Source: Bugula neritina
Taxonomy: Eukaryota; Animalia; Bryozoa
Reading direction: 5' to 3'
Length of the DNA stretch: 64,000 nucleotides
NCBI GenBank assembly: GCA_964035545.1
Contig: OZ037765.1
Location: 33,603,504-33,667,503, forward strand
Shown here in pieces: positions 3,337 through 59,100 of this stretch; the first letter of the stretch is position 1; each line of letters begins with the position of its first letter. The notes under the pieces were generated by a model that was given only the letters and a program-made list of their open reading frames with translations, had not been told where the DNA came from and searched no databases. Made by a program: the position numbers and the translations under genes.

Positions 3337-3337
3337 C

Positions 3338-3355
3338 TGGTGGCAGCAGTGAGAT
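3338..3355 (+). promoter_or_regulatory. Primer binding site, probably tRNA-Leu type
   Basis: TGGTGGCAGCAGTGAGAT directly after the LTR, complementary to a tRNA 3' end ...TGCCACCA. The tRNA identity is from memory of Leu tRNA ends and has not been searched. Confidence 0.75.
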
Positions 3356-3405
3356 AATCGTCTGGTACAGACTAAGCTGATGCTCCCCCACGGGGAGAGA
3401 CAACA

Positions 3406-10346: not shown

Positions 10347-10563
10347 TGGTGGCACTTCTCTTTATGTAAATATATATTCTTGTGTGTATTAATTCATTAT
10401 CCCTTAGCATTTTCTATCTTATATATTTTTGTTTGTGTGACTAGATTAGCCATTCCAGAACTCCCTTACATGTATTTTCTTTTATTTTCTTCTTTTTTTT
10501 TATTATTATATTTTTTTTTTAATTATATCAGAAAGGGGTTGTACTTTCTGATGGAGGGGAGTG

Positions 10564-11280
10564 TGTGGTAAAATTGTGTATAGTAACTAATGCTTGTATT
10601 CCCCTTACTATTATTATCTTCATTCCCATGGAATGCGTGTTTTCTTAGATATACATCATTACTTAGCTATAGTATTGTAACAGCTAAGTGTTATGTTGGC
10701 AATGATAGGATTAGCTATTATTCCCAGCTACTTATTACTACTAACGTGACTGGATTAGCTATTGTTTCTGACGGCTCACAGGAACACTTATATAATCAAG
10801 ATAACCGGGATTTCCCTGCGAAGTTCGCTCGATTCGAGCGATTCCTTTATTCTAGCCCTGCGAATCCCCTGCGATTCGAGCGAATTCCCTCGAATTCGCT
10901 CAGAACATTCTGGTGGGAATGTTTCCCAATGTATAAAAGGAAGCCCTCAACACAGTAGAGTCAGTCTTCAGCCAGCAGCACAACAGGACACATCTCGGAG
11001 CTACCAAGCCAGGACAATAACACACGTAGTTAATTATCTTATACTTTGTTTACCAGTTTACTAGTAAGTTTTCCATACATGTAAGGAGTTGTCCTCCCTA
11101 ACTGCTATTTTTGGATTTATATATATTATGGAGTAAATAAAGGGGATTGTGAGTATTACATTTCTTATTTATTGTGCATAAATACCCTCTTACAAAGAGT
11201 CACTGTGTTCAATCAGCTAACAACCCACACCAATAATTGCATGCAGCGAATCATAACATTCTACGCATAAAATTATTACA
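10564..11280 (+). repeat. 3' LTR
   Basis: Direct repeat of 2620-3336, preceded by purine tract GGAGGGGAG and followed by TSD ATTG. Confidence 0.95.
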
Positions 11281-17448: not shown

Positions 17449-18299
17449 CTCTCAGGTAGACTGGATATTCTACATCTATTCATATCCAACTGTTTAAGTG
17501 ATGTGAATGATGACACAACATCTGGTACTGTGTTGAGAGTATTCTCTCCTATGTCTAGTTCCTCTAACTGAGTCAGCTGACTAAGACTGTAATATAAAGA
17601 AATAGCATATAGATTACACTAGTGCTGTATAGTGTAACAGTATAGTGACACATAATGTATGTCTACTATAAACTCCTCAACAAATTCATATATAAATCAT
17701 ATCATGAGTGGAAGTGCTCTGACTCAGATATACTCAACTAAATACTCACTTATTCAGACTCTTCTTGTCAGTTATCTTACGGAGTACCAAACAAACAGCA
17801 TGAGAAGCAATCTCTCCTATATTCTTAGGAATTGTCCCCTCTAACTTGAGGTGAGTGAGTTGATAACTCCCAACTTGAGTCTTCACTTCACTCAAAGTAT
17901 ATGATTTGGTTCTAGCATTGTATACACCTTCCAAGTTTACAGGATCCTGTCCAGAATGTCTGAACCAGATTCTGAAAATCCCTGTAACACAGAGATTGTA
18001 GTATGTATTACCATACTGTAGCATTACCATTACCACACATACCTGGCTGTAACTGATGCTTATAATATTATATAATGTTTTCTACTTTATCTAATAATAC
18101 ATAATTTAGAATAGTGTAAATGTGTACGTTTACAATTGAAGTATATTAAATATATTGCTTAAAGTCAGTGAATTGTGACAAGTGTTGTATTTTCTACATT
18201 AATAAGTCATTTGATGATTTCCTAATCCAAAAGAAAGAGCATACGAATATCTGAGAGGATTGAAAATCTCACAAACGGTTACTACATACCTGAAGACAT
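17449..18299 (-). CDS. 5' part of third LRR-ROCO-caspase paralog (gene C): exons 18290-18299, 17750-17981, 17449-17586; no downstream exons seen in the window
   Basis: MSS-G|IFRIWFRHSGQDPVNLEG...KSLN then a 138-nt LRR cassette (LSQLTQLEELDIGENTLNTVPDVVSSFTSLKQLDMNRCRISSLPE). Strong similarity to 42052-42584, including the intron. GT-AG sites intact. Confidence 0.75.
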
Positions 18300-18569
18300 G
18301 GTGTTATTCTGTAATGAGTCAACAAACCATTAGCCAATCATATTAGACCTTCAATAATGCCTCTACTATCCATTACAAGATCACATAATCTTCTACACGC
18401 TGAAAATATACAACAATAATATGATTAATTTTATTTTATAAAATAGTGAAAACACATGTATTTTGTATTATAAAATGCTATCAATTAATATACATATTAT
18501 AGTCTTTGTAAACTTTTGATACAATCCTCAAAATTTCCTATCCAACCAGTTGTTGAAACTCTAGTTGTA

Positions 18570-26700: not shown

Positions 26701-27800
26701 CTACTCAGTATCTGGACAGACTTTGTATTTAGGAAACAATAAAACCTTTCTCAATCCAGTGAGAGTCTTTGTTACAACTGGAACCTGCTGTGTCATGTGA
26801 CTATGTTTCTCAGCCAACTTTTTAGTGACCTTTTTGACTCTCTCCTGTACCTGTAATAATCAACATGGTTTATATAGAGACACCATAACAATACATATAT
26901 AGCTTTGTTTCTAACTTGAGGAATTAATGAGAATGCATTGGTTCAATAATTTGGGAAACTGCTATATAGATAATTTGAATATAAACATTGTGTACTGGCT
27001 GTATATAGGGGCCAATAAACATGGTATTAGTCTTATTTAAATATTTCTTTTTCAACTATGCTTACATAGATAAATAAAGATATAAAAAGTGCAGTGGCAC
27101 ATGACACACATCACATGCAACACATCACATGGCACACGTCACATGCAACACATCACATGGCACACATCACATGACACACACTACATTAAAGCAGAATAAT
27201 ATATGACTTACGATATCAAACAGAGAAGCAAGATCTCTATGAGAAGAATGTTTGTACAGAGTTTTAACCAACTCTCTGATGAATGGACTTCCATAGTTTG
27301 GATCTCGTATAGAATTTCGACCTGAAAAAAAATTAGTTCTTTCAAGGTTTAAAAGAGTTGACATGACACTAATATACTTGAAATACATCACTGCATACAC
27401 TCTACATTTTAGGCTTAAACTACATATGATGAGTATTAATGGTCAGCAAGAACAGAAAACATAAATTATGAGGCACTTATGCTAAATAAGAGTTTTATAG
27501 AAAGTAATATCAGTATTTCTATTTTAAGATAAAAGTATTTAACAGCCCGAACCTCAGCAGCTAGTCATCATGCAGAGAATACCTACAGCTACCAACATAT
27601 AGATGCATATATACACAGTATCATCAGTTACAAGTAGTTGAATGATTTACCATCAAAGCAAGACTGCAGTATCAACAGATCATCAACATTCAAGTCATTC
27701 CGTCTGCTTGTAGTTTGTTGAGTTTCCTGTTGAGTTTCCTGTCTGGTTGAACTCTCTCCAGACTCAGCCTCTACTCTCTCTATCTGGGCATCTGTGGCAG
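26701..27800 (-). CDS. Gene A caspase inter-subunit linker and small (p10) subunit exons (27651-27800, 27212-27321, 26701-26850)
   Basis: DDLLILQSCFDG|RNSIRDPNYGSPFIRELVKTL...HRDLASLFDI|VQERV...QQVPVVTKTLTGLRKVLLFP matches the caspase p10 pattern (D.L...S...G..S.R....GS.FI..L; Q.P....TL.K.L.F). Confidence 0.88.
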
Positions 27801-30800
27801 CTACACATTCCAATAACGATATTTTATAGATGTAAAAGAAACACTACTCTATCTATTGTATCTCTCTACTGAGAACTATACAATGTTCAATGTTCAGTGC
27901 TATACAAAAAGTTCTGAATATGAAGAAGCAAACTAGTTTATTCACAGAGAGACAACATATATCTTTCAGAGATTTCAGTAAACTGCTCATATGTTACAAA
28001 TATATGTTACAAGATATGAGTAGCACTAACATATTGTATGTACAACTCACCACTTCTACAAGCTACCACGATCACCACTTTAGGTTTCCCAGCCATGTGC
28101 TTGAAGTTGTCGGAAGACAACAAATCAAAGACATTGAGAAGCTTCACTGGTTTCACATCAGTTCCATAGAGAACTCCATGAGCACCAAATGTTCCACCAT
28201 GAGACATGAGTACAGTGACATGCATACCATAGTCTTCATTGTCAGGGCGTTGAATCTCATATTTGATATCCTTCAGCATTTGCTATCACTGGATTCAATA
28301 TATATGAAATAAGTGTGAGAATAATAATCAGCATTATATTGAGTTTGTGTTATTATGTACGTGTTAATGGAGCTTATATATATAGATGACAGAAATTGAT
28401 TGACATAAAGATTTCTGAAAGAATCCCTGACAAATTTTACTCATGCAGTGGTAAAATATTATTATATATATTAGTTTTTATCTACATTATGTTTAAATAT
28501 TGTATGTCTAAATAAAACTTATTTTGTAATGGATTTTGTCAGAGTATGTGCTGAAATGATTTGGGATTTCTGATCACTTAGAAAAGATGTTTCTGGTTGG
28601 CTTTGACTTTACCGTTTCTATAAAACCTATACTAATTATAGCTAACTTTCATTGCATGCTATTTTTAGCTGCTAAACTGAACAGCCTAACCACTGAAATA
28701 GCTTGAAAGTTCAAACTTTGAACTTCCAATTCATATTAGTAATTAGGCTGTGCAGTGCAGCAGCTAAAAATGACATGAACGAAAGTTAGCTATAATTAGT
28801 ATAGGTTTTATAGTAGTGGTAAAGTCAAAGCCAACCAGAAACGTCTTTCCCAAGAGATCAAAAATCCCAAATCATTTCAACACATACTGACACAAAATCC
28901 ATTATAAAACAAAATTAATTAGTTGGGCATACAACCTTATAACATTATTTAAATGAAAACTAATGTATATAAGTATATTTTACTACTGCATAAGTAAAGT
29001 GTGTCAGAGATTCTTCAATATATATCATGCTAGAGGACTTGGCTATAAAGTATACTTATGTGATGTTAATAATGGAAGCCAGTTCACCTCAGCTGTTCTA
29101 TTATATTTCACATCAACTTCAAAGTCCAGATTTCTCAGTACTGCTAGAGTATTTGTTACATCCACATTGGAACCTGTTCTCTTTAGCTGAGGATAACCAT
29201 GGAAGACATTGTTGTTGATAATCAAAACTTTTCCTCTGGCAGTCTCACTCATTCTGTACACCTGGGGGATGGTAGCAATTGCTGGTGTGATGTAAAACTT
29301 AATATTTCAGGTTTACATTGCAACAAGTTAAATTTTTGTGGCACAAACACAAATCCTTGCACTAGCTGTTACAGAACTTGTAAATTATGAAATGCAGAGC
29401 TTTTTTGGCATATAGATAACTCCCAGCTCTAATTTTGGGCTATGTGGCAACCGGTGGGAGGGGATGCGATGAAATGCACAGTTACAGTATTACTTCACAT
29501 GTAAGAAATCTCACTCACTAACCACAATAAAAAACATGCATATATCTCAATTATTCAGTGTTACTTGTTGAGAATAATAATACACAGGTTTATGTTTTTC
29601 AATCTAAAGTATTTTCTGAGTTAATTTAAAAAATAATAACAGCTTCCATCATGTTACTGAAATCAGATTTAGTGCTGATCAGATAATGCTCAGTCTGAAA
29701 ATGTGTATGGAGGTACCTTGTTAGAATAGAATAATTGTTTAATGTCTTCTCTTCTGGTTGTAGAAACCTCCATCTTGACATTGTGTTCTTCTTCAGGAAG
29801 GAAGAAATCTTTATGATCAGAGATATCACTCTCAGCATCAGATTCAACTTGAGTCTCATCTAAGAATATTACTAAGTAGTGTACTATAGGATAGATTGCA
29901 TTTCATCTAATTAGGCCAAGCTTCTCAGGTATTAATTATCAACACATATGATAACAATCATTTACATAGTTCTAGGATATGAAATCTGAGGTATGCTAAC
30001 ATGTAACTGGTTAGCTATATAGGACACACTAATACCATAAGAGTACTAGAATAGCAATTACCTTCAAAACTGCTAGACTGTTCATATTTGCTAAGGAATT
30101 TTGAAAGATCTTCTTTTTGTTCTTTAGACAAACTGGGGACTACAACGAATAATATGACTAAATTGATAAACACACAACCATATAATATTATAAACTAAAC
30201 ATAACCTTAGTCAATTAACATAACAATAAATAAATACATTAGTATATAAATTGTGAATATAGTCAACCAGAACGTGGTTGTAGTATGTGATACTCACAGG
30301 GGTTGAAGAGACACTCAGGTACAGAGGGATCTTTCTTGCATGTGAAGTGTTTAGTGTCAGATGAGTGGAGAGAAGACTTCTCTCTTTTGCCATGGTACTG
30401 GACCCAGGAGGGATTCATGAGTTTGGAAGGGTGGCGGTCCTCTTCTAGCCCGCAGTGAGGACAGAAGAATTTGCATCCTATTTTACAGGCACGCCATCTG
30501 GTCTCAACGTATTCAATAGAGGAATTAGTGATGTCAACCAGAACTTCCCATGCTCTGCATACTTGACTGGAGTCAAAGGAAACACAGATGTTTACTATTC
30601 CTGACTTGTAGTCATGTACCAGCTGATAGGTTACATCTTTGTTCACCACACGAGCTCCATTATTTTTGGCTGTTATGGAGTCTGACTCTTGAGAGAAAGA
30701 ATTGAGCATGTCTACAGCAAGCTGGTGGTAGGCATACTGTGGTAGTGGAAGGCCATCAAAACGTAGCTGAGCATGAAAGGTGACGCAACTCCTTGTGTTA

Positions 30801-33800
30801 GGTAAGTTGTCACTAAGGAACTCCTTACAGAAGTATGGCACAATGAATGAGCTTTCCTCATTGTTTAGCTTAGTGTGATACATTATTCTGAATGTCAGCA
30901 AAATGTTAGCAGCAACTCTCATGGCAGCATTCTCAACAAATTCCGTCTCTGTTTGTAGCAAATGTTCAAACAGCTTACCATGCATGATTCCTGTTGAAGT
31001 AAATTTATCTGCAAATGACCTGTATTCATCCAGAGTAAGAAGTTGTTGCACAGCCGAAGTGGAACTGCTAAAATCTGACAGACGCCGCTGCCAAACTGTG
31101 TCATCATGAGTGAACAGAACTTGCAGGAGTGAAGTGACTGTGGGGATGCGATAGAATATGTAAGGACGCAAGTCCTCATTATTCTTGTACCAGAGCAGCA
31201 TGCCACAGTTGTGCATGTATGTCAGGATGATGTCAAGTTGATTTTCGGTTAATGAGATGCTGTCGGAAAACTGGCTGAAGATGTCTTGGAATGACTTGTA
31301 ACCTTTGTCAAACTTCTTCAAGGCTTGTTCAACTTCCACCCAGGTTCTTGGTATTACTTTCACAAACTGCTTACTCTCTCTCAGCAGTCTCTCTCTCAGC
31401 TGTATGAAAGCTTCACAGTAAGCACTTCCAACCTTATAAATATCTTCAGCTCTGAACATATTCTTTCCTTCAAAATGTTTAATTGTTGAAAAAGCACCGC
31501 CATTTTTCCACTTGCTCTTTTCATCGCGACTGATGATTTTAAAAACATGCTTTGTGTGATGGAAAAAATGATCTTCAATCTCTTCAACCTCGCTTTCATC
31601 AATCTTATCCAAATGAGTCAACACTAAGGTAGGAGGTCCAAGGTTAGGGTAGGTCAGGTAGAGATGTGACAACCAATCAAAATACAGTCGTCTCACTGCC
31701 TCATTACCACCAATATCATGCTGCAGGGCTTCATACTGCTCCAGACTGACGACAACTATTGGGATACAATTTGGTTTCAAAGTAAACCGATATGTCGACT
31801 GATAGATTTCATGACCTCCAAAGTCAATGAATCGCAGCACATCATTATCTACACAAACATCTTCCATTTTGAACACAGGAGTTGTATCATCATCAAGTCC
31901 ACCATTTACTCTGTGAGTAAGAACTCTGGTTCTATCTGTACTCTGTAGTGTCTTAATCAGACTAGTCTTGCCAGACATAGTCTGACCAATAACAGCAACA
32001 GTTACCATGGAAACTTCTACACTGTCACCGTTTCTAATGTCTGTGTAGTATTGTTTGATAGCACCTGCTCCTTGTTGACAAACTTCATATGGTGGTGAAG
32101 CCAATGACACACAACCCTTAGCATCTATATGTGTTAGTAGAGGCATGTCAGCTATCTCTGGTGTCAGAACTTTCAGAGATTTATTTCCACTGAGGTTAAG
32201 ACTTCTCAAGCTAGATAATTGGCTGAAGTTATCAGGTAAACATGTGATCTGGTTTTTTGTCTCCTGATCTTCTAGAAAACTTGCATTGGAAATATTCAGG
32301 TGCTGGAGGTTTGATAGGCTCACAATACTATATAAATAGAATTTTTTTCAGTAATTAATATTATAATTCAGTCAAAATTATATGAGAGAAAAGTTTTTTT
32401 TCTAGCTCTATATAAATGCAAATAATAAAATTAGATTATAACTTACTGACTTATCCTTATTTCACTGTACCAATATAGTATACATTAGTATACATATTAG
32501 GGGTAACAGGGCAAAACGGGCCAAAATTTGAATTTTTTACTCGCATTCGTCTGTTTTTCAAGTTTTCAAGTTGCCGGGGCAAAATGGGCCAGTTTTTAGT
32601 AACATGTGTTACAAAATTCCAGGTGACTTTGTTTCATGAACTGTAGTTAAGGTGGCTGAAGCTTGTGGCTGGAGTGTGGAAATGCTGCGGGGGGGGGGGG
32701 GAAATGAGCAAATCATAATTTATTTATTTTAATCAAATACATGTATATTCTCTCAGTGGTGTAATAAACAATGAATATCATGACTATCTACTAGTAGCAA
32801 CAGCAGAATGTTTTGTATGAAATATACATTGGCGAAGTTATAATCTCACCAGATGTATGTATTAGGGGAGCTTCACCTTGTAGTTTGGTAGTCTTACCAT
32901 GATGTTTTTGATATTTTACAGAAAGAAAGTCAGAAATGGCAATATCTATAGATTTCATTAATATTTCAACTAATTTTTTGGGCAAACAAATTAATAACAG
33001 TAATTAAGGTGCAATAGTCAGGTGGCCCATTGTGCCCCTATCAACGTGCCCCTTTGTGCCTCTTGTGGCCAAGGTGAAAATAAATGTGGCTCAAGGAAAA
33101 TTTATTTTAGAACTTGCTATTATACCAGTTAAACAATGTAGAGACAAGCAATGGCAACAATATCAGTAGAACCTAGGTTTGTTACCTTTGAGTGCAAAAA
33201 GTTACAATGGCAACAATATCAGTAGAAGCTAGGTTTGTTACCTTTGAGTGCAAAAGTTACAATGGCTGAATAATTATAATGTCATTACCTTTTTATTAAA
33301 AAAATCACAACTCTAAGTCATTAAGTTCTTGCACAATTTGACCCGCTTTTTTACCCCTATGACCATTGTGCCCCTCCCCCACTGCCCCTATACACTACTA
33401 TACGTAGTATACATTACTATACATAGTATACATTACTACGCATAGTATACATTACTATGCATAGTATACATTACTATGCATAGTATACATTACTATACAT
33501 AGTATACATTACTATGCATAGTATACATCACTATACATAGTATACATTACTATACATAGTATACATCACTATACATAGTATATATTACTATACATAGTAT
33601 ACATTACTATACATAGTATACATCACTATACATAGTACACATTACTATACATAGTATATATATTACTATACATAGTATACATTACTATACATAGTATACA
33701 TTACTATGCATAGTATACATTACTATATACATAGTATACATCACTATACATAGTATACATCACTATACATAGTACACATTACTATACATAGTATATATTA

Positions 33801-36800
33801 CTATACATAGTATACATTACTATACATAGTATACATTACTATACATAGTATATATTACTATACATAATATACATCTCACATAAATTATAATGATTACTAT
33901 AGTCACAATAATATCCTGTATAAAGCAGGGAATCAACACAAATATGCTGTGTTACTGTGTGTATTACAACTATAAAAATGTTTAAATTAATTAGGAATAT
34001 TTCGCTAGTCTGAATAATTTCCTCCAATGTCATGTCAGAGGGAGCCTCTCTAAATAAGCACACCCTTACCATTTCATTTTGTTTAGAAGTAACCTCCATT
34101 TATCTTTCACTAATTACACTTCAAGAAGGGGGCCACACAGTTTTTCTTATAAATTGAGACTTTTAAGGGTCCTAATTAATCTGTAAAAACCCTAGACTGT
34201 TCTCTGCACCCAGGTAGCCACAAAAGCATTTCAAACTTTCAAAGGAGTTGTTTTCCCCTAATTTTGTATAAACTGGTTGAATATCTTAAAAGTAATGAGA
34301 CTCATGAGCAGGTTAGTCTGGACTCTAGAGGATATTTTGGAATTGAACAATTGAGTTTTACCAACGAATTTAAACTGAACCATATTATGCTTTATAAGCA
34401 ATGTTTTCAAAAAAGTTCTAATGATTAAAATGCATACTTTTTATACTGTTTTAATGATGACTTCCAAGATAAAACTTATTTAATTCAGTAAAAGTTATAA
34501 AGCAAATACTCTAAAGCTTTGCTATAGTTGAAAATACATAATATAATTTTAAGCCACCGATTATATAGAAAAAAGATCTGGTGGTCTCTCATTCGAAGAT
34601 CACGGGCAAGTACATCTTGTGTCACGTGTTACAAAACAAAATAATTTAATACTAGAAAACTAGGACAAGCTGTTCTAGAATGTAGACTGCCTGAGTAAAC
34701 CAGAAAAACTAACACCAGGTATTATCCAAAGTCTGAACGGGTTAATTGTCACAGACCTATAAACACAATTAAGCTAAGAGTTACCTAAGCATGTATTGCT
34801 GTTTAATATGCTCTATTCCATTCTCTAACAAAGGTGACTCAATAAAATTGGCAGCTTTATCCACAAAAACGAACTTATGCTGCACATAAAATATTTATCA
34901 GACAGCCACCAAGAGAAGGGCAACAATTGCTTTTGTCAATGCACCATTTCCAGATTATTATTAGTCTGGCAGAAAAATGCCAATTTTTGACTTAGGTTCG
35001 CAATCCCAGATAAAGTTTTTTTCTCTCCTGATTATTCAAATATAGGGTCTAGGTAAATGTTTCCAGGTGGGTGTGGACTTCTTACCCTTGAGCATTTCGA
35101 GAAATTCAAGATGGCCGCCAGGCACCAAACGATTTTTTCTAATTCAAATGTACCTACCCATTGGGGCTAAATTTAAAGTTCCAATGCTTTGAAATCTTTA
35201 GAAATTAATATAATAAAGATGCATGTGCCTTTATCATAATATGTATTATTGAGTAATAGGCAAATGATACCCAAGGGTAACTAAGCTAAGCCTTAATCAT
35301 TCATTTTTTCAAGTTTAACCTAGCCTTGCCGTGTTTATAATTTCCTTGCATCTCTGCATCAGTTTGTTCTAACTTTATGAAAATTTACTATATGGTGTGA
35401 TTTTATATGCTGATTACAAATATGTCTACCAAATAAAGTTGAAAGGGGTTCTGCAAACTTAAAATGCAACGTCATTGCCATATGAGCTAAATAGCAATTT
35501 ATTTCCAACTGGCATGCCTATCGAAAAGGTTTGTTGAACTGCCAACCTAATAGTTATTTTCAGTTTTAAAACTTTAGCTATTTTTTTTAAGTTATAAAAA
35601 GGGGTCAACAACCTTAATAACACAGCACCATGGCTTCTTAACATAAGTTAATTGCTTTATTATTGTTGCATCATTTATCTAAATATTGACATTTTTGCTT
35701 TCGTAAACTATTTCTACAATCAGCACATTTCACTTTTCCTCTAAAAGCATTTGTAAACAGTTTTTTTTATGAATGAAAATGTATTTCATACTGAGGGAAG
35801 TAATACATCTATTAGAACAGTTGTTCCATACCTTTTTCATACCAATCCCCTTTCATTAACGTTCACTATTAATTTCTCAATTTTTAATGACCTATGTTGG
35901 GTGCACTGAAACACTAATAGCTGAAAGTGATTTGGTAGAAGTAGTTAATTCTACTTTTGGTAGTTTCTCAAAAATGCTAAATAGAAAAGTTTCCCTAGAA
36001 TGTACAAGATCTGAGAATATTGGTGGGAGAACTGTTAAAGCCAGTCTTGATGAAAGTGTAATCACTAGCATGAAGAAGCTTGAAAAGATGTTGATTAAGA
36101 TTGCAGAGAGCTCAAGAACAGCAAAACTGTGGGCCATGTGCTTTATTGGACCAATTTTTACCATCAACACCCACATCATAGCTGTTAGAGAATGAGACTG
36201 GGCCTTACACCTAGCAATGGAAGAGGAAATGCACTATCTGCATAGCGTGAAAGTCATGCCCCATGATGTAAGGATTGAATTTGCGGCTGGTAACCACACA
36301 ATGCATCATAAACGCGGCCAGCTCGACGGCATCTGGTTGGACATGACCATTGAGGTGACCTTCGTAAGATTTGGTCACAGCAAGGGGGAATCATTGGCAT
36401 CACCGCTAAATCTGAAACTCTCAAGGTGTGGGTGTACAGCACTTCTGCATTGCATGCAACAAGATACAGTATGGCCGCAGTGACATCAGGGATGAATCTG
36501 AAATAAATGCTTTCACTACTCATAAGGATGAGATGCAATCAAGAATCCAATCTGAGTCTGTCAAATGGAAGATTGAACTCTGCAATGACCCACTAAAAGA
36601 ATGATGCCACCCAGTTGCTTTTGTCAATATTGAAGCAGATAAGTGCAACTGAGATGAGGATGCTTCGAAACATTTACAGTATGAATTGGGAAGACCATGT
36701 AACAAATGATAATATAAAGGAGGAGGCCAAAATAGAAGCTATCGCAATAGACATGAGGAGGAGACCTCTTCAATAGTATGGACATGTGCGCAGAAGAGAT

Positions 36801-39800
36801 ACGGAGGAAGATATTATAATGGTGGCTAAGATGAAGATACAGAGAAAGAGAAAGGGAGAGGGGGGAGGGGGCAAAAAAAGGTTAATGGATACAGTGAAGG
36901 ATGGCATACTGAAATGTGGTTTCTCAGATGAAGATGTTGACAATAGAATCAGATGACACTCTCTGATAACACTTGGTGCCCTGCAAAACCGCTACTCATC
37001 CTGGACCACAGCGTACTGGGTGAGCCCTATAATGAACAATTTGCTGCCTTCCCATGGCCTCTCAGGGGCAACAATGTAAAATATCGGAAAGGGAGTCATA
37101 CTAAATGTCTTGGTAGAAGGAAAGTGTGATTTGGTGACACTAGTGCTTTTTTTCAGGATGACTATTCATACAAGCTACCAAGTTTATGCTATGTTGCTAC
37201 AATTATGCAAAGTGCTCCTCCATGACATCTACAAGACAAAAGGTTTGGGAAACCAAGGTCAGCAATGCTATTTGCAATGTGCCTTTAACTTATGGACTTT
37301 GCCTCCTACAGATGAAGCTATTGGACAATGTCACCAGAGCACACCTCCAGGTAGCCATATGAAACTGCGGCATTAAACCCACTGGAACATTGGTAGGTGA
37401 TAGGGAATCTAATAGAATCTCTTTTCCCAAGAGGAGTAGGAAATGATGTTGTGCTTACACCAGTCAGTATCATGAAGTGGATCATGTTAGTTAATTTGGT
37501 GTGCACTCGACGACTCTGGCTTTTGGCGAGTTTTTACAATTTAGCTGCTATATTGTATATATACTTTTGCCTCAAACTATCAAAATTTTAACAAATAAAA
37601 CTGAATAATTAAGGCTTTTCCAATTATGCGTGATTTTCTATGTCTATTCCTAATTTATTATTACATTGGGATATTATATAGGCCGTGATGATTCACAAAT
37701 GTATATTTAGCTCGTATGACAATGACGCCGCGCTTAAATGTTGCAGGACCTCTTCCCAGTCATTTTTGTTATGCATAGATAGAATCAACGAATTCTATTA
37801 CCCCATATAGTAAGTTTTTATGAATTTTGAGCAAACTTTAAAATGTTTGATCATAATCTGCTGATGTATACTAAATAAAGTAAAATGGCCGAAATTCATT
37901 AAATGCTCCTGTGGAAGCCAACAATCATGCAAAACAACACGATATGGCTATTCTAGTACATCTATCCCATGCACAGAGTTCTGCCCTTGTGAAGCAGTAG
38001 CAGGAGTGTGCTGCAATGAACTAACATTTCTAATAAATGCTAATGATAGAAAAAAAATGAAAAAGGTATTTAATATGAATATATGAGTAAAAGTTTGTCG
38101 CATTTGTACGATTATATGTATGTTCAATTTTAACTTTAGCTGAGCAATATGCTGCATCTGTATCTTTTTTCACTTTCTATTCACTGGCAATAAGCAAATT
38201 TTTTCTTTATATATCTGTCCAGTGTCCAAACAGTTATTCAAAAACCTTGTATCATTTTTCTGCACCATATGTGATGTTTTATTGAAGCAATTCCGATTTT
38301 TGAGCTGAGAAACATGTCTCTTGGGTCTTTACTTTGATTCCTTTTTACTGGCATGACACATATTCATTCCAAAAGTGCGCATCTATTTTTTTCTTCAAAA
38401 AAATTTTGTTTTTGCAACATAATATAGACTTTATGCCGACTAGATTACGATTTTGTCATATTTGGCGGCCATCTTGGATTTTTCGAAATGCTCAAAGGTG
38501 GCAGGTCCACACCCACCTGGAAACATCTACCTGGACCCTCAAGATAAATAATCAAAAGAGAAAAAAACTTTATCCGAGATTGCGAACCTAACCCCCAGTT
38601 CTGCCAGACTATATGGGTAGAAACTGTTAAGAATGGCAGCATCACTATAAAATGACTGACACAAGCCCTTGTGCTCAAAAATGCATTGAAAGACATATTA
38701 TAATGCTGCTGCAATACATCCTGAAGTGAATGTCAGAAATCTCAAGTGCACTGGTGTATGTCAATGCAGGGATTGTCTAAACAGAAGATACTTTGGAGGA
38801 AAATAAGCAGATGAAATTAATGGCAGCAGTAATATAATTATGGTAAGAAAACTCTACACAATGGAACACTACTTTGAAAATTTTGTTATATAGTTTGCTC
38901 CCTAATATTTTTGTGATTTCGAAATGAATTTAAAGAATCTTGTTACTTTTTACAGATATTTAGTGATCACCGTCAGATCAATAGAAGACTCATTTGGTAA
39001 GTTCTCAAAAGCTGTCAACATGTAACGATAGTATATGTCTTTTAAACACTTGATTCTTTGACACATCATCATAAAAAGCTTTTGATCTTACATAACTATA
39101 GCTTCTTTAATAAACATATTATGTAGGCTTCTGCCAAATATTATAATGTGCCATCCATATAGCAAACATGTGTTTCTATTAACAACTCTAAAATAGTGCT
39201 TTGCAATTTATAGATTCAGAATCAGTGTAGAACTATAAAAAAGAAACAACCAATTTTGATTTGTCACCAACTCTTATTGTTTTTATAGAGGGCTAGTTAG
39301 TTAATAGTAAATGCTTCTTTTATTACCCATCAAAGATGTCGATTTGCGTTTTTGTGCAGAAGCTTGAGTTAGAGTAGAGATAGAATTCTAGAGTATAATA
39401 TGTAAATTTTGATCTAGAATAACAACTTTTTTTGAGTGGCGACCTAGTAAAGTGTAATAAGGTGAGTTTTTGAGCACTTTTTAGGAGGTTACTTCTAGAC
39501 CAATTGTATAAGACAGGAAGATCAGGCTGAGTACAGGTAATACGAGTAAGCTTTGTATCTTGTATATTATTTTATATACTTTAAGTGGTGTATATATATA
39601 ACTTACCAGGAGATAATAAAAATATTGTGAAGTAGTAATAAACATGTGACACACAAACCTATCAGGTAGACTGGATATTCTACATTCTCTCATATTCAAC
39701 TGTTTAAGTGATGTGAGTGATGACACATCATCTGGTACTCTGTTGAGAGTATTGTATCCTATGTTTAGTTTCTCTAACTGAGTCAGCTGATTGAGACTGT

Positions 39801-42800
39801 AATATATAGTTATACTATGGGAAAAGAATAAAATTACACATCACATATGTATATTATGCAGCACAGAGATATGCATGGGACCACAACTCATATTATACTA
39901 ATACAATATCTATTAGTTGTCAAAGTTATAATATCCCAGTTAAACTGGTGGCTTTAGCATCTAATATGACTTTTACAAATAATTATACTTGATTTTTGTG
40001 TATGTCAGAATATTAAAAATGTGTGATTCACCTATGAAATTTTTACAAGTCTGAATAATTCTACACATGGTCATGCATAAGGGTGCTTCTCGAAATTACT
40101 GTGGTCCACCCTTACCATTTCATTGCATAACACACGGAACTCAGGCTGAGTACAGAGATTATAGCTATACTTTGTATCCTGTATATTATTTTGTATACAA
40201 TAAATTGTGTATAAATAATATAGTTGAAAGGAAGGCAATTATGATGTGAAGTAGTAATAAACATGTGACACACAAACCTCTCAGGTAGACTGGATATGCT
40301 ACATTCACTCATATCCAACTGTTTAAGTGATGTGAGTGATGACACAACATCTGGTACTGTGTTGAGAGTATTCCATCCTATGTCTAGTTTCTCTAACTGA
40401 GTCAGCTGACTGAGACTGTAATATAAAGTTATACTATGACAAGAGAGTAAAATTACACATAACATGTATTTTATACAGCACAGAGATATGCATGTGACCA
40501 CAACTCATATTTTACAAATAATATATTATTGATGATTTGTCAAAGTTATATCTCAAGTAAATCAATGGCCTTAGCACCTAATATGATGCTTACAAATATA
40601 CTGGGTTTTGTGTATGTCATATATAACAAAAAATGTTTTAACTACTTATGAAATCTTCATGAGTGCTAATAATTTTATTTATTGTCATTCGAGAGGAGGG
40701 CTTTCCAAATAATTGCATCCTAGCTTTACTATTTAATTGTATAACACAGGGAACTCAGGCTGAGTACAAATATTATAGCCACACCCTATAGCCTGGATAT
40801 TATTTTATATACTATATAAGTTGTGTATAAATATAAGTTACAGAGTAGTGATAATGATGTTGTGAAGTAGTAATAAACATGTGACACACAAACCTCTCAG
40901 GTAGACTGGATATACCACAGTTATTCATATTCAACTGTTTAAGTGATGTGAGTGATGACACAACATCTGGTACTGTGTTGAGAGTATTCAATCCTATGTC
41001 TAGTATCTCTAACCGAGTCAGCTGACTGAGACTGTAATATAAAGTTGTACTATGACAAGAGAATAAAAAATTTGACATAATATTTTATGCAATACTGAAA
41101 TATGCATGAGGCCACAACTCTGTATTTCACAGATATATTAATTAAAAGTAAAAATAATACCCAGATAAAGTGGGCTATAGCACTTCATATGACTATATAC
41201 TAATATGTATCTACTAGAAAGTATACAATATGCTAAGCTTTAAACGTGGTCATAATTACACTCTACCCTTACTATTTAATTGTATAACACAGAGAACTCA
41301 GGCTGAGTATAGAGATTATAGCCACACCCTATAGCCTGGATATTATTTTATATACTATATAAGTTGTGTATAAATATAAGTTACAGAGTAGTAATAATGA
41401 TGTTGTGAAGAAGTAATAAACATGTGACACACAAACCTCTCAGGTAGACTGGATATTCTGCAGTCACTCATATCCAGCTGTTTAAGTGATGTGAGTGATG
41501 ACACAACATCTGGTACTGTGTTGAGAGTATTCCATTCTATGTCTAGTATCTCTAACTGAGTCAGCTGGGAGAAACTGTAATATAAAGTTATACTATGACA
41601 ATAGAATAAAATTACACATAACATGTATTTTATGCAGCACAGAGATATGCATGGGACCACAACTCATATTATACTAATACAATATCTATTAGTTGTCAAA
41701 GTTATAATATCCCAGTTAAACTGGTGGCTTTAGCATCTAATATGAAGCTTAGAAATTTACTGGTTTCTCTTGTATGTCATAACATCCGAAATTCTTGAAT
41801 TACTCATGAAATTTTCACGAGTCCTAACACTTTTACTCATGGTAATTTGAGAGGAGGGTTCCCCAAATAATTACACTCTATCCTCATTATTGAATTGTAT
41901 AACACAGGGAACTCAGGCTGAGTACAAATATTATAGCCACACCCTATAGTCTAGATATTATTTTATATACTATATGAGTTGTGTATAAATGTAAGTTACA
42001 GAGTAGTAGTAATGATGTTGTGAAGTAGGAATAAACATGTGACACACAAACCTTTCAGGTAGACTGGATATACCACAGTGATACATATTCAACTGTTTAA
42101 GTGATGTGAGTGATGACACAACATCTGGTACTGTGTTGAGAGTATTCCCTCCTATGTTTAGTATATCTAACTGAGTCAGCTGAGAGAGACTGTAATATGA
42201 AGAAATAGCATATAGATTACACTAGTGCTGTATAGTGTAACAGCATAGTGACACATAATGTATGTCTACTATAAAATCCCCAACAAATTCATATATAAAT
42301 CATACAATGAGTGGAAGTGCTCTGACTCAGATATACTCAACTAAATACTCACTTATTCAGACTCTCCTTGTCAGTTATATTACTGAGTACCAAACAAACA
42401 GCATGAGAAGCAATCTCTCCTATATTCTTAGGAACTGTCCCCTCTAACTTGAGGTGAGTGAGTTGATAACTCCCAACTTGAGTCTTTACTTCACTCAAAG
42501 TATATGATTTGGTTGTAGCATTGTATACATCTTCCAAGTCTACAGGATCCTGTCCAGAATGTCTGAACCAGATTCTGAAACTCTCTGTAACAACACAGAT
42601 ATTGTATTATCATCATACAGAGGCTGCAACTAATGCTTATGATATTCTAAATGTGTGGCTACACTTTCTTTTTACCACAACTTTATCACAGCCAGTTAAT
42701 GCAGGTTAAATAATTACAGATGGTTCACAGTGTATTCTACTTCATGTATAAATATTTTGTCAATCTCTCAATAATCGCCAAACCCATTTAGTTGCAGCTG

Positions 42801-43623
42801 CTATAATAGTTATCAAATACATTTTTTATAATCAGTTGAAAGAACTTTGGACCTACCGGACAGCTCGAGTATTAGAAGTCATATATATATGCTAAGTATA
42901 ACTATACCAGTCTGTGATAAACTCATAATGGTCAACTCTGTACACATGACATGCAGTTTAAACAGGCAATTATTGTGAATGTTTTTAATTACAGAGACCA
43001 CTTTTTAAGTCTATATAACTGCCTTTGAAATTGTCTAACATTTTATATAGTATTTTAAAGCAGAAAATCCACCTTATAGTTTAACAAAAAGTTGGCTTTT
43101 AAACCAGATTTGGTTGGGTGTTACACATTTTACCATGCAATCATTGTGTTGCTTTTCATCCTAAAGACATGACATGACCATCATAGTTAATATTTTAGCT
43201 AATGAGCGTCAATGCTATACCACGCTCTACTTTTCTACCACTATACTATTAGGAACGTAATCCCAGCATGTTATTTGGAAGAAAGTGCTTTTGGTATTTT
43301 TCCAAAGCTCTTCTGATATATTCAAGTAATGCAGGATTTATATTCATATATAGCAAGATATAGTTGCTTACTTAATGTAGCCAACCCAAGTTTTTTTTTC
43401 TACACTCTTTTGTGACATCTACCGGTTGTTCTGCTTGTAGCTAAAAGCCTCTAATCTATATAATGTGTTTCTTTTTAAATTTTGCATCAGAAAAGATTAT
43501 GTTTTCAGAATATTAGAAGCATGAAATGCATTTAGCTTTAGTCCAATTTAACAGAGAAAGAAAAACACTACATTGAATACATTAGAATAATGGTAGATTA
43601 CCTCCAGAAGTGTCTTCTTCCAT
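26701..43623 (-). CDS. Gene A: LRR-ROC-COR-caspase fusion, ~1336 aa. Coding exons 43602-43623, 42353-42584, 42052-42189, 41437-41574, 40894-41031, 40278-40415, 39659-39796, 30298-32327, 30062-30139, 29717-29859, 29088-29261, 28051-28282, 27651-27800, 27212-27321, 26701-26850
   Basis: All junctions GT-AG and phase-compatible; total 4011 nt = 1337 codons ending in TAG. An in-frame TGA lies upstream of ATG 43623. Exon sizes are reproduced in paralog B (the ROC exon is 9 nt longer there). The acceptor of the 27651 exon has in-frame alternatives. Confidence 0.85.
28051..29261 (-). CDS. Gene A caspase large (p20) subunit exons (29088-29261, 28051-28282)
   Basis: YRMSETARGKVLIINN, RTGSNVD, LMSHG (catalytic His), GKPKVVIVVACRS (catalytic Cys). 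Confidence 0.92.
28490..28940. mobile_element. Foldback/MITE-like inverted repeat in a caspase intron
   Basis: ~28528-28689 is the reverse complement of ~28743-28905 (e.g. GGCTTTGACTTTACC / GGTAAAGTCAAAGCC). Paralog B has only one arm (~55440-55690). Ends approximate. Confidence 0.7.
30298..32327 (-). CDS. Gene A large exon: last LRRs + ROC GTPase + COR
   Basis: LRRs, then SPPYEVCQQG cap, P-loop GQTMSGKTS, FIDFGGH (DxxG), LVLTHLD (ROC G4), COR motifs IPRTW and YMHNCGMLLWY, C-terminal CPHC. Confidence 0.92.
32500..33388. mobile_element. Non-autonomous DNA transposon (MITE) flanked by TA; paralogous copy at ~59199-59997
   Basis: GGGGTAAC.GGGCAAAA...TTGTGCCCC...CCCC termini with repeated subterminal GGGCA(A/C)AA motifs. 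Same site in genes A and B. Confidence 0.65.
33389..33870. repeat. 19-bp minisatellite (TACATTACTATACATAGTA), paralogous to 59998-60280
   Basis: About 25 tandem units. Confidence 0.93.
34962..38611 (+). mobile_element. Second Academ-like family nested inside copy 2
   Basis: TIRs TAGTCTGGCAGAA / TTCTGCCAGACTA extending >150 bp; TSD TAT. The empty site is visible in the paralog at ~62640. Decayed transposase: SSRTAKLW, DMTIEVTFVRFGHSKG, LPPTDEA, KCSC...CTEFCPC. Confidence 0.8.
36640..37030 (+). mobile_element. 3' fragment of a non-LTR (RTE-like) retrotransposon inside the nested Academ
   Basis: Decayed frame MRRRPLQ*YGHVRRRD...KKRLMDTVKD...DVDNRIR* resembles the RTE-type RT C-terminus (RLRWYGHV.RR...RW.D.V). 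Confidence 0.6.
39659..42189 (-). CDS. Five tandem 138-nt two-LRR exon cassettes of gene A (39659-39796, 40278-40415, 40894-41031, 41437-41574, 42052-42189)
   Basis: Each is TACAG|T...AG|GTTTGTGTGTCACATG, phase 2-2, 46 codons = 2 x 23-aa LRR; unit spacing 543-619 bp. Confidence 0.93.
42353..42584 (-). CDS. Gene A N-terminal cap exon (degenerate LRR, no signal peptide)
   Basis: SFRIWFRHSGQDPVDLEDVYNATTKSYTLSEVKTQVGSYQLTHLKLEGTVPKNIGEIASHAVCLVLSNITDKESLN; same 232-nt size in gene C. Confidence 0.8.
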
Positions 43624-53120: not shown

Positions 53121-56100
53121 CTACTCAGTATCTGGACAGACTTTGTATTTAGGAAATAATAAAACCTTTCTCAAGCCAGTAAGGGTCTTTGTTACAACTG
53201 GAACCTGCTGTGTCATGTGACTATGTTTCTCAGCCAACTTTTTAGTGACCTTTTTGACTCTCTCCTGTACCTGTAATAATCAACATGGTTTAAATAGAGA
53301 CACCATAACAATACATATATAGCTTTGTTTCTAACTTGAGGAATTATTGGGAATGCATTGGTTCAATAATTTGGAAAACTGCTATATAGATAATTTGAAT
53401 ATAAACATTGTGTGGTGGCTGTATATGGGGGTCAATAAACATGGTATTTATCTTATCTAAATATTTCTTTTTTAACTATACTTTCATAGATAAATGAAGA
53501 TATAAGAAGTGCGGTGGCACATGACACACACTACATGACACATCACATGACACATATCACAGGACACACATCACATGACACACACTACGTTAAAACATAA
53601 CATATGACTTACGATATCAAACAGAGTGACAAGATCTCTATGAGAAGAATGTTTGTACAGAGTTTTAACCAACTCTCTGATGAATGGACTTCCATAGTTT
53701 GGATCTCGTATAGACTTACGACCTGAAGTAGTGTAATAAATGACTTATATAAAAGACATGCAGTCATATAGAGTCAGAAGCACCACTTGATAATACTAGG
53801 TCAGGGATTCTGATATAAGCAGACAGAGTTTACAGAACTCTTTGGTAAATGAGATGTTAAGTTGTGTATCTGTTACTTTATAATTATCAGAAGAAGTCAA
53901 TATGACCTTGCTATTGGGAATAACTTGTTCCCTACTGTATAGCAGCTAATGAACAACTACAAAAACCACACAACTACAAATAATTGTAAAATATAAAATA
54001 TAAACTGTAATTGAAAATATAGTTCATACTATAATGTGTGAGTATCTGTAAGGTTGCACTGCTATGATAATTCATTCTATCTGTACAACACTTATGATCT
54101 GCATGTACCACTAGATGAGCATACAGGTGGCCCTGAAGTACTTTACTGATAACAGAAAAGAAAATACTCCAAGCTATTAATTTGTGTATGAATTAAATAA
54201 TAGTATAAAAATAAATATAATTAAATTGGAGAAAAAGAATATAATATATTGCTACAAATTGAAAACATGCAAATAAATCAATGAGCATTAAGTAGACCAG
54301 ACATGTCTGTAACAGCTTACCATCAAAACAAGACTGTAATATCAACATATCATCAATGTTGAAGTTCTTCCTTTCCTTTTCAATTTGCTGACCTCCATCC
54401 TGACTTTCCTCTCCTTCTGAGCTTTCCTCAGATTGGGCTTCTATTTTCTCTACAAGTACACAGACAGTAGCTACATATATTGTATGATAACAGATTCTGT
54501 CAACATATTGGTGAAGTTTGAATTTTCACAGCATTCAATTTCTCAAAATCTGATCTGTTACTTGTTTGATAGTGTGGTGGGAGATAACTCCACACTGTGA
54601 AGTGAGTTGGGCTGTAAGAGATCTATAATAACACTAATGAGCCTTTTCTAACAGACGTGTGTAGATATATTTCAGTGTATATTATAGGTATGTTTTAGTA
54701 GATTATCCAAATTATTGCTAAACATGAGTTTTATGTTTCTTTGATAAATTGTAAAAGCTGAACCAAAAACGTTTTTAAAGTTTTGCATTGGTGCAACAAT
54801 CAGAAATATAAAAAATATAAATACATCAAATTAGCTCATACACTTACTAGCCATTCTGAAAGTTACAGCGGAAATGAAATATTGGCAGTTAATGCAAACT
54901 TTTTGTAAAAATAAAAACTCAATATATAAAAATATTTAACCGGTCAGCAATGGGAAGAAATAGAAACACTGAATTGTTATGTGATAAAATACTGCAGTGT
55001 TTACCATTTCTACAGGCCAGCAAAATCACAACTTTAGGTTTCCCAGCCATGTGATTGAAGTTGTCCGATGATAGCAGATCGAACACATCTAGAAGTTTTA
55101 CTGGTTCCAGATCAGTTCCGTATAGCATTCCGTAAGCTCCATAAGTGGCACCATGAGACATGAGTACAGTGATATGCATACCATAGTCTTCATGGTCAGG
55201 GCATTGAATCTCATATTTAATATCCTTCAACATTTGCTGTCAATAAATTTAATATATTAAATTAGTGTGAGAATAATAATCGGCATTAGATTGAGTTTGT
55301 GTTGTTATGTGTTAAGGGAGCTTATAGATAGATGACAAAAAGTAATTGGCATAAAGATTTCTGAAAGAATCCCTGACAAATTTTACTTATGCAGTGTTAA
55401 AATATTATTATATATATTAGTTTTTATTTACATTCTGTTTAAAGATTGTACACCTAAATAAAATTTGTTTTATAATGGATTTTGTGTCAGTATGTGTTGA
55501 AATGATTTGGGATTTCTGACCGCTTGGAAAACACATTTCTGATTGGCTTTGACTTTACCGTTGCTATAAAACCTATACTAATTATAGCTAACTTTCATTG
55601 CATGTCATTGTTAGCTGCTAAACAACACAGCCTATAATCACTGAAATAGCTTGAAAGTTTAAAGTTTGAACTTTCAATTCATATTAGTAATTAGTTCACC
55701 TCAGCTGTTCTATTATATTGCACATCAACTTCAAAGTCCAGATTTCTCAGTACTGCTAGAGTATTTGTTACATCCACATTGGAACCTGTTCTCTTTAGTT
55801 GAGGATAACCAGGGAATACAATGTTGTTGATAATCAAAGCTTTTCCTCTCGCAGTCTCACTCATTCTGTACACCTGAGGGATGAATGCAATTATTGGAGA
55901 TGTGTAAAACTTAGAAAATCAAGTTTATACTACTACAAGTAAAATTTATGTGGCACAAACACAATCACTTGCACTAGCTGTTTCAGAACTTGTTAATTAT
56001 GAAATGCAGAGCCTTTTTGTATATGGATAACTCTTAGCTCTAATTTTGGGTTATATGACAACCAGTGTGAGGAGAAGCAATGAAATGCACAATTACAGTA

Positions 56101-59100
56101 TTACTTCACATGTATGAAATCTCACTCACTAACCACAATAAAAAACAAGCATATATCTCAATTATTCAGCGTTACTTGTTGAGAACATTAATACACAGGT
56201 TTATATTTCCTAATCTAAAGTACTTTCTGAGTTACTTTAAAAAATAATAACAGTTTCCATCATGTTACTGAAATCAGATTTAGTGCTGATCAGATAATGC
56301 TCAGTCTGAAAATGTGTATGGAGGTACCTTGTTAGAATAGAATAATTGTTTAATGTCTTCTCTTCTGGTTGTAGAAACCTCCATCTTGACATTGTGTTCT
56401 TCTCTAGGAAGGAAGAAATCTTCATGATCAGAGAGATCACTCTCAGCATCAGATTCAACTTGAGTCTCATCTAAAATATTACTGATTAGCATAAAGCATG
56501 CTATAATATTTACTATGTACTGTATACGAAATTCTAAGATAAGATTGTTATTGATTGTTCAGTAGTACACACCTCTATGATGGCACAGAATCACATGGTA
56601 TGTGTCAGCATTACATTAACACATTCCATTAATGGACATTATTACATTATAACATATACTTATAAAATATAACAGAGATCATGATGCAAGTTGAATTGTT
56701 AGTCATCTAGCTACTTCAACATAGTATGAGAAAAGTATATTATTTACCTTCAGAGCTGTTAAATCTTTTATATTTGCTGAGAAAGCTTGAAAGATTTTCT
56801 TTCTGCTCTTCAGACAAACTGGTGACTGTAAAAAGTAATATGAATGTATTGATGAACACACAACTACATATTGAACTATTATAAAGTAATGAAACCTTAC
56901 TCAAATGATTTAAAAGCTGCATACATATGAGTATATAAATTGTGAATATAGTCAATCATAACGTGGTTGTAGTATGAGATACTCACAGGGGTTAAGGAGA
57001 CACTCAGGTACAGAGGGATTGTTCTTGCATGTGAAGTGTTTAGTCTTAGATGAGTGGAGAAAAGACTTCTCTCTTTTGCCATGGTACTGGATCCAGGAAG
57101 GATTCATGAGTCTGGAAGGGTGGCGGTGCTCCTCTAGCCCACAGTGAGGACAAAAGAACTTGCATCCTATCTTACAGGCACGCCATCTGGTCTCAAAATA
57201 TTTAATAGAGGAGTTGGTGATGTCAACCAGAACTTTCCATGCTTTGCATACTTGGCTGGAGTCAAAGGAAACACGGATGTTTACTATGCCTGACTTGTAG
57301 TCATGTACCAGCTGATAGGTTACATCTTTGTTCACCACACGAGCTCCATTATTTCTGGCTGTTATGGAGTCTGCGTCTTGAGAGAAAGAATTGAGCATGT
57401 CTACAGCAAGCTGGTGGTAGGCATACTGTGGTAGAGGAAGACCATCAAAACGTAGTTGAGCATGAAAGGTGACACAACCCCCTGTGTTGGGTAAGTTGTC
57501 ACTAAGGAACTCCTTGCAGAAGTATGGCACAATAAATGAGCTTTCTTCATTCTGTAGTTTACAGCAGTACATTACTCTGAATGACTTTAGAATCTTAGCA
57601 GCAACTCTCATGGAAGCATTCTCAACAAATTCTGTCTCTGTTCGTAGCAAATGTTCAAACAGCTTAACATGCATGATTCCTGCTGAAGAAAATTTATCTT
57701 CAAATGACCTGTATTCATCCAGAGTAAGAAGTTGTTGAACAGTCGAAGTGGAACTGCCAAAATCTGACAGACGACGCTGCCAAACTGTGTCATCATGAGT
57801 GAACAGAACTTGCAGGAGTGAAGTGACTGTGGGGATGTGATGGAATATGTAAGGACGCAAGTCCTCATCATTCTTATACCAGAGCAACATGCCACAGTTG
57901 TGCATGTATGTCAGGATGATGTCAAACTGCTTTTCAGTTAATGAAATGATGCTGGAAAACTGGCTGAAAATGTCTTGGAATCGCTTGTAACCTTTGTCAA
58001 ACTTCTTCAAGGCTTGCTCCACTTCCACCCAGGTTGTTGGTATTGCTTTCACAAACTGCTTACTCTCTCTCAGCAATCTCTGTTTTAGCTGTATGAAAGC
58101 TTCGCAGTAAGAGTTTCCAACTTTATAAATATCTTCAGCTCTGAACATATTCTCTCTTTGAAACAGTTTTATTTTTGCAAAAGCACCTCCATTTTTCCAC
58201 TTGCTCTTTTCATCGCGACTGATGATTTCGAAAACATGCTTTGTGTGATGAAAAAAACGATCTTTAATCTCTTCAACCTCGCTTTCATCAATCTTATCCA
58301 AATGGGTCAACACTAAGGTAGGAGGTCCAAGTTTAGGATAGGTCAGGTAGAGATGTGACAACCAATCAAAATACAGTCGTCTCACTGCCTCATTACCACC
58401 AACATCATGCTGCAGGTCTTGATACTGCTCCAGACTCACAACAACTATTGGAATACAATTTGGTTTCAAAGTAAACCGATATGTTGACTGATAGATTTCA
58501 TGACCTCCAAAGTCAATGAATCTCAGCACATCATTATCTACACAAACATCTTCCATTTTGAATACAGGAGTTGTATCATCATCAAGTCCACCATTTACTC
58601 TGTGAGTAAGAACTCTGGTTCTATCTGTACTCTGTAGTGTCTTAATCAGACTAGTCTTGCCAGACATAGTCTGACCAATGACAGCAACAGTTACCATGGA
58701 GACCTCTACACTGTCACTGTTTTTAATGTCTGTGTAATATTGTTTGATAGCACCTGCTCCTTGTTGACAAACTTCATATGGTGGTGAAGTCAATGACTCA
58801 CAATAATCAGTATCTATTTCTGTTAGTAGAGGCATGTCAGCTATATCTGGTGTCAGAACTTTCAGAGTATCATTTCGCCTGAGGTTAAGATGTCTCAAGC
58901 TAGATAACTGGCTGAAGCTATCAGGTAGACATGTGATCTGGTTTTTAGCCTCCCGATTTAGTATATATTGTAGAGAATGTCCATTAGAGATATTCAGATG
59001 CTGGAGGTTTGATAGGCTCACAATACTATATAAATACAATGTTTATTAGTAATTAATATTATAATTCAGTCAAAATTATATGAGAGAAAAGTTTTGTTTC

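Follow-up and report, generated by a model that had tools for sequence, protein, structure and literature searches.

Does a single bryozoan gene join an LRR sensor, a Roc-COR GTPase and a caspase in one polypeptide, and what would such a protein do in the cell? The question was raised by open reading frames scattered over the minus strand of a 64,000-nucleotide stretch of Bugula neritina DNA (contig OZ037765.1; hereafter the window, with positions counted from its first letter). To our knowledge, the immunity of bryozoans is almost unstudied at the molecular level.

Gene structure and transcripts

The first-pass annotation had proposed that these frames splice into one protein of about 1336 aa. 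Recomputation of borders and phases gave the same result: gene A comprises 15 coding exons (43623-26701, minus strand), all introns are GT-AG, and the joined frame is free of stops up to the TAG ending at 26701. By the sum of exon lengths it holds 1337 codons including the stop, that is 1336 aa. The encoded order is N-cap, about 13 LRRs, Roc, COR, linker and caspase; five 138-nt phase-2 exons supply two LRRs each and exon 8 three more. Profile searches were run exon by exon, and the Pfam scan of exon 2 (N-cap) returned no match. The exons are as follows.

43602..43623, minus strand: coding part of exon 1, proposed ATG and 7 codons (from the sequence; phase fits exon 2)
near 43724, minus strand: probable start of exon 1 (from the sequence)
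42353..42584, minus strand: exon 2, N-terminal cap, a degenerate LRR-like stretch (borders and phase; 96% copy in paralog C)
42052..42189, minus strand: LRR cassette exon 1, 138 nt, phase 2-2, two 23-aa LRRs (borders, Pfam)
41437..41574, minus strand: LRR cassette exon 2 (borders, cassette comparison)
40894..41031, minus strand: LRR cassette exon 3 (borders, cassette comparison)
40278..40415, minus strand: LRR cassette exon 4 (borders, cassette comparison)
39659..39796, minus strand: LRR cassette exon 5 (borders, cassette comparison)
30298..32327, minus strand: exon 8, 2030 nt, last three LRRs, Roc, COR-A, COR-B and a CxHC...C cluster
30062..30139, minus strand: exon 9, helical linker behind COR (RNA joint; the Watersipora homolog model has a helix here)
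29717..29859, minus strand: exon 10, acidic linker with several Asp, and a helix ahead of the caspase (RNA joint)
29088..29261, minus strand: exon 11, start of the caspase large subunit, S1 arginine RTGS (Pfam; caspase-1 alignment)
28051..28282, minus strand: exon 12, catalytic His and Cys (Pfam; caspase-3 alignment)
27651..27800, minus strand: exon 13, intersubunit linker and first strand of the small subunit (RNA joint to exon 14)
27212..27321, minus strand: exon 14, small subunit, second S1 arginine in SIRDPNYGSPF (Pfam, RNA joint)
26701..26850, minus strand: exon 15, end of the small subunit and stop (RNA joint; protein identical in paralog B)

As the annotation had also noted, the exon structure recurs in paralog B, with the same borders and phases from the last LRR exon to the stop. 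Gene A is real, intact and conserved. Among named database proteins, its best matches were those of Bugula neritina, at 81-87%. An inverted-repeat (MITE-like) element at 28419-29015 sits in the intron that separates caspase exons 11 and 12; half of it is found in paralog B.

Contigs from four runs of four studies, whose status as RNA was guessed by the tool, were mapped on positions 26600-32400. They lay on the exons, and six of the seven introns between COR and the caspase end were removed at the predicted lengths, with net skips of 158 (COR/exon 9), 202, 455 (linker/caspase), 805, 329 and 361 bases; among the rows listed, 28051/27800 was the one junction of this part without a joint. The first three skips fall on the junctions 30298/30139, 30062/29859 and 29717/29261, which the annotation had named for transcript checks, and these probable RNA contigs match the introns predicted there. 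Many of the contigs were 85-95% alike to gene A, so that many come from paralogs or other alleles; they derive from gene A or its close paralogs. In run X1, the depth of three joints equals that of a 728-base contig ending in the COR exon, which suggests that a single contig runs from COR to the His exon. In a second bryozoan, Watersipora subatra, two RefSeq proteins, XP_067947674.1 (1419 aa) and XP_067948342.1 (1413 aa), contain LRRs, a Roc-COR-like part and a complete caspase. The model of XP_067948342.1 from Roc to the end consists of Roc-COR, a helix, a disordered linker and the caspase.

The LRR-Roc-COR exon

By all features that could be tested in sequence and model, the predicted product of gene A is a ROCO. 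Pfam found LRRs, Roc (E 1.7e-4) and COR-A (E 1.4e-8) in exon 8, the latter two just below the curated cut-offs. The G1-G4 motifs of Roc are present as the P-loop GQTMSGKT (Lys codon 31969-31967, minus strand), the invariant Thr149 (exon numbering), DFGG and THLD, and the P-loop and G4 motifs were kept in 29 of the 30 Roc loci read. The AlphaFold model of exon 8 (pLDDT 87.5) matched LRRK1, the C. tepidum Roco and LRRK2 in a structure search (E 4e-26 to 1e-18), and its matches to the COR-only chains 3dpt as well as to full Roc-COR structures place COR directly behind Roc. Identity in the structural alignments to LRR-Roc-COR proteins of known fold was 12-16%. Neither Pfam nor fold comparison revealed a NACHT or NB-ARC ATPase in gene A; its switch is the Roc GTPase, and it does not belong to the NLR/STAND proteins.

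At the end of exon 8 (30298-30470, minus strand), a CxHC motif and a further Cys are invariant or nearly so across 63 homologs. This CxHC...C cluster at the COR end, adjoining the linker, is a possible zinc site.

The caspase exons

Peptidase_C14 (Pfam) was matched on three separate exons, in order, at model positions 1-49, 51-128 and 173-204. The catalytic His (SHG, codon 28201-28199) and Cys (VACRS, codon 28060-28058) were located by alignment to caspase-3, the latter through ACR. The first S1 arginine was placed by aligning RTGS to RTGA of caspase-1 and the second, in SIRDPNYGSPF, by motif; a homolog aligns here to SWRNSARGSWF of CED-3. The caspase part of the Watersipora homolog model matched caspase-9, CED-3, caspase-7 and caspase-3 (TM 0.8 by target). 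The pentapeptide QACxG is replaced by VACRS in A and LACRN in B and kept in the relatives from Watersipora and amphioxus. Thus the tail of gene A is classed as a caspase (C14A) by its predicted p20/p10 fold and His-Cys dyad, not by the pentapeptide. No CARD or DED pro-domain was matched by Pfam in the big, linker and caspase exons of gene A, nor in the full-length homologs.

Since the Gln of the Asp pocket is replaced in both A and B, caspase activity or specificity may differ. The domain could be a weak or altered protease or a scaffold in the manner of cFLIP or MALT1, which signals rather than kills, or it could have a non-Asp substrate, for instance a microbial protein or a pore-forming effector. 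The changes around Cys (Gln to Val or Leu, Gly to Ser or Asn) speak for this, as do about 13 of the 133 caspase-exon matches in the genome, which stop before the Cys position and may mark dead copies. However, the His, the Cys and both S1 arginines are retained and the catalytic exon is apparently under purifying selection, and we consider such an altered, scaffolding or non-Asp role unlikely.

Gene family and sequence variation

The Roc part of gene A has matches at 110 distinct loci in the genome and the catalytic caspase exon at 133 places. When the two lists were paired by eye, 109 of the 110 Roc loci were followed on their own strand by a caspase exon, 108 of them at no more than 12 kb and one at about 17 kb; the remaining locus had none. 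About 0.4 loci would be expected if caspase exons were scattered. With the RNA joints and the Watersipora models, this linkage upholds the single-chain fusion first read from the open frames. The loci are spread over several chromosomes, and there are 762 candidates for the LRR cassette. Three members lie in tandem within the window: B, A and the beginning of C.

53121..63892, minus strand: paralog B, tandem upstream of A, running past the window end
63892-63755, minus strand: last LRR cassette of paralog B
59025-56987, minus strand: Roc-COR exon of paralog B, followed by seven linker/caspase exons
17449..18300, minus strand: start of paralog C; further LRR exons and the Roc-COR exon lie left of the window
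near 18300, minus strand: candidate ATG exon of paralog C
17981-17750, minus strand: N-cap exon of paralog C
17586-17449, minus strand: LRR cassette of paralog C

The first coding exon of paralog C is unlike that of A, and a gap of about 36 kb separates its cassette from the next LRR exon, left of the window. A Ty3/gypsy-type LTR retrotransposon lies at 2618-11280 (plus strand). Its 719-bp LTRs are 99.6% identical, and it has a gag-like ORF bearing a zinc knuckle (3406-4506) and an open pol ORF of 1975 aa whose long C-terminal extension contains a C2H2-like finger. As the element stands between the first and the later LRR exons of paralog C, it is probably intronic.

When A was compared with B, Roc had a pN/pS of 0.20, COR 0.3-0.4, the catalytic exon 0.18 and the last exon 0 (identical proteins at pS 0.13), whereas the last LRRs reached 1.2. 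Judged from these values, the Roc, catalytic and last exons are under purifying selection. In six LRR cassettes pN was 0.26 versus a pS of 0.09. Across seven cassettes, the 11 columns of the predicted binding face had 19 amino-acid variants and no silent one, and the 34 frame columns had 8 amino-acid and 6 silent variants (Fisher p 0.003; p about 0.04 against the neutral share of silent sites); since the cassettes are few and kin by duplication, these values describe a pattern and are not a formal test. In these sequences the LRR binding face varies faster than its frame. The introns flanking the cassettes (39503-42202) are near-identical among cassettes, with 2.4% difference over the 28 bases that follow the donor, which is what recent tandem duplication or conversion would produce.

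The caspase-exon matches that end just short of the catalytic Cys are found in a C6 cluster (about 2.6-6.1 Mb), on C9 and on C1, and may be catalytically dead copies or decoys. Clusters of caspase exons at C9 9.32-9.41 Mb and C2 30.5-32.9 Mb have no nearby Roc match; the exons in each are related, and they represent about 24 caspases with a different N-terminal part or none. Pfam searches of the genome gave four matches for CARD. In the searches for NACHT and NB-ARC, made exon by exon and limited in sensitivity, NACHT gave one weak match and NB-ARC none, and Apaf-1 was likewise unseen. The scarcity of NACHT and NB-ARC in this genome is suggestive only.

A possible Roc-gated caspase receptor

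What would a caspase behind a Roc-COR module do? We think it probable that gene A belongs to a large bryozoan family of single-chain cytosolic surveillance receptors, in which dimerisation of Roc-COR, shifted by a ligand, fires the caspase. The fusion, the roughly 110 loci and the variation of the LRR face are the observed part of this explanation; for the switch, the ligand and the outcome we infer the following. In the resting cell Roc would be loaded with GTP and the protein would be monomeric or held by its LRRs, so that the tethered caspase would remain monomeric and inactive. Binding of a foreign or non-self ligand by the LRRs would shift the Roc-COR cycle towards a COR-COR dimer or higher oligomer, in which two caspase domains would meet on their flexible linkers and be activated by proximity. 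Self-cleavage within the acidic linkers may come next, and the outcome would be cell death or inflammatory-type proteolysis. In function such a protein would stand in for an NLR inflammasome or apoptosome, but it would need no adaptor and would use a GTPase where those have a STAND ATPase.

Initiator caspases are activated by dimerisation. A case of chemically induced caspase dimerisation is cited by Zhang et al. (2008, PMC2575513), and the Roco of C. tepidum forms dimers in its empty and GDP-bound states but is monomeric with GTP (PMC5714945). Combined, these would render a caspase behind COR inactive in the GTP monomer and active in a ligand-driven dimer or oligomer; the direction of this switch is borrowed from the bacterial Roco, and it differs among Roco proteins. 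Family size and the pattern of LRR variation lend the receptor reading indirect support. It is possible, though we hold it tentatively, that about 110 Roc-COR-gated caspases with diversifying cassette LRRs might form the main intracellular immune receptor class of bryozoans in place of NLRs, as an adaptor-free, GTPase-switched counterpart of the inflammasome, arisen independently of that in amphioxus, and with COR dimerisation directly firing the protease. If true, this would give animals a further class of intracellular receptor, one whose switch is a Roc GTPase and not a STAND ATPase. For LRRK2 it is still disputed what the Roc-COR monomer-dimer cycle does, and the caspase tail would offer a natural and direct read-out of this cycle as protease activity or cell death.

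Instead of sensing pathogens, the same machine might tell self from non-self where colonies meet, or might serve symbiont control and the programmed degeneration of polypides. Bryozoan polypides undergo recycling, which counts for degeneration, but a developmental trigger would not need variable LRRs. Variable LRRs would suit allorecognition as well, and bryozoans are listed among the colonial animals with allo-incompatibility linked to cell death (PMC8195603). However, some 110 loci on several chromosomes look more like a broad pathogen repertoire than like one or two polymorphic fusion loci, and a role in colony recognition, degeneration or symbiont control seems rather improbable to us. Much less probable is a receptor for damaged membranes or a trafficking signal in the manner of LRRK2 or MFHAS1, clustered by Rab or lipid recruitment and not by an LRR ligand: the nearest solved folds are indeed LRRK1 and LRRK2, some as Rab-bound oligomers, but gene A has no ARM/ANK, kinase or WD40 parts, and a single host ligand would not drive cassette variation across 110 paralogs. 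That two adjacent genes were duplicated as a block, a ROCO ending at the read-through stop at 30263 and a separate caspase, could be read from the in-frame stop behind the donor of the COR exon and from some Watersipora models that stop before or within the caspase, but the spliced joints of COR, exon 9, exon 10 and caspase in four studies, the 728-base contig apparently spanning COR to the His exon, and the full-length RefSeq models of 1413 and 1419 aa have already largely refuted it, and we regard it as almost certainly wrong.

Comparison with known systems

The architecture had seemed new for animals at first reading. This did not hold for the layout, which is described for bacteria (PMC8195603); amphioxus has LRR-caspase proteins (PMC2575513) with database relatives that carry Roc-COR, and a caspase with a ROC pro-domain is mentioned for Owenia (PMC11463336). 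In the mostly non-subscription literature covered, we found no paper on the bryozoan family or on an assay of any such protein. The Roc-COR-caspase architecture is a kind known only from computation, and what is notable here is the family size and the cassette-built sensor. In RefSeq the bryozoan proteins are labelled 'MFHAS1 homolog', a kinship that is putative, and a large bryozoan family appears to be hidden under such labels.

For bacteria, Kaur et al. (2021, PMC8195603) describe LRR-AP-GTPase(Roc)-COR-effector proteins as predicted counter-invader systems and list at least 24 C-terminal effectors, a caspase among them. These proteins share with gene A the domain order, fast-evolving LRRs and several paralogs per genome. 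In contrast, gene A is intron-rich and has an animal-type p20/p10 caspase, and across some 110 bryozoan paralogs the sensor varies but the effector type stays fixed. The confinement of Roc-COR to a single exon raised the possibility of a recent transfer from bacteria. No close bacterial relative was found among the best matches, three of the four nearest tree rows were checked and lay on gene-poor, eukaryotic-looking contigs, and such a transfer gained no support. The contigs of four distant Roc-COR matches were too short to reveal a caspase.

In amphioxus, 'LRRs-caspase' proteins were proposed as a shortcut from recognition to apoptosis, with Roc unmentioned (Zhang et al. 2008, PMC2575513). 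Database proteins of Branchiostoma floridae, B. belcheri and B. lanceolatum are LRR-Roc-COR-caspase; BRAFLDRAFT_67388 / XP_002614028.1 is an example, and such proteins may be the published ones. Their caspases are only 26-30% identical to the bryozoan ones and keep QACRG. In our Roc-COR trees, the amphioxus caspase-bearing ROCOs nested among amphioxus ROCOs with GT4 or OTU tails, and the bryozoan rows formed one long-branch clade. A single clade of bryozoan and amphioxus caspase-bearing rows was rejected (AU p 1.4e-8), which favours independent fusions; a clade of the bryozoan rows with the whole amphioxus clade was borderline (AU p 0.046). These were quick trees with a long bryozoan branch and no vertebrate MFHAS1 among the rows. 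If the independent fusions are true, a Roc-based receptor design would have been reached at least twice, in bryozoans and amphioxus, paralleling bacteria and brown algae.

A caspase with a ROC pro-domain in Owenia fusiformis was mentioned in passing in a study that sampled no bryozoan (PMC11463336). Compared by description only, it likewise has Roc and caspase in one lophotrochozoan protein, but it is a single gene with no LRR or COR noted. The LRR-ROCOs of brown algae are expanded candidate immune receptors with LRRs on repeated, shuffled cassette exons under diversifying selection (PMC11378527, PMC3341825); unlike gene A they have no caspase, three members have a trypsin-like peptidase tail, and each cassette exon holds one LRR instead of two. 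With MFHAS1/MASL1, LRRK1/2, DAPK1 and the C. tepidum Roco, gene A has the LRR-Roc-COR core and fold in common, and it differs from them in its caspase tail. NLR inflammasomes and the Apaf-1/CED-4 apoptosome would resemble it in sensor repeats, a nucleotide switch and a proximity-activated caspase; however, gene A is one chain with no STAND ATPase and no CARD/DED/PYD adaptor, and is not a member of these systems.

Amphioxus ROCOs swap GT4 glycosyltransferase, OTU and caspase tails at the same position, sometimes two per chain, like the bacterial systems. One 916-aa frame of an ENA metagenome (L031 217-2967) combines LRRs with a pannexin-like domain of the LRRC8 type and a caspase that has QACRG.
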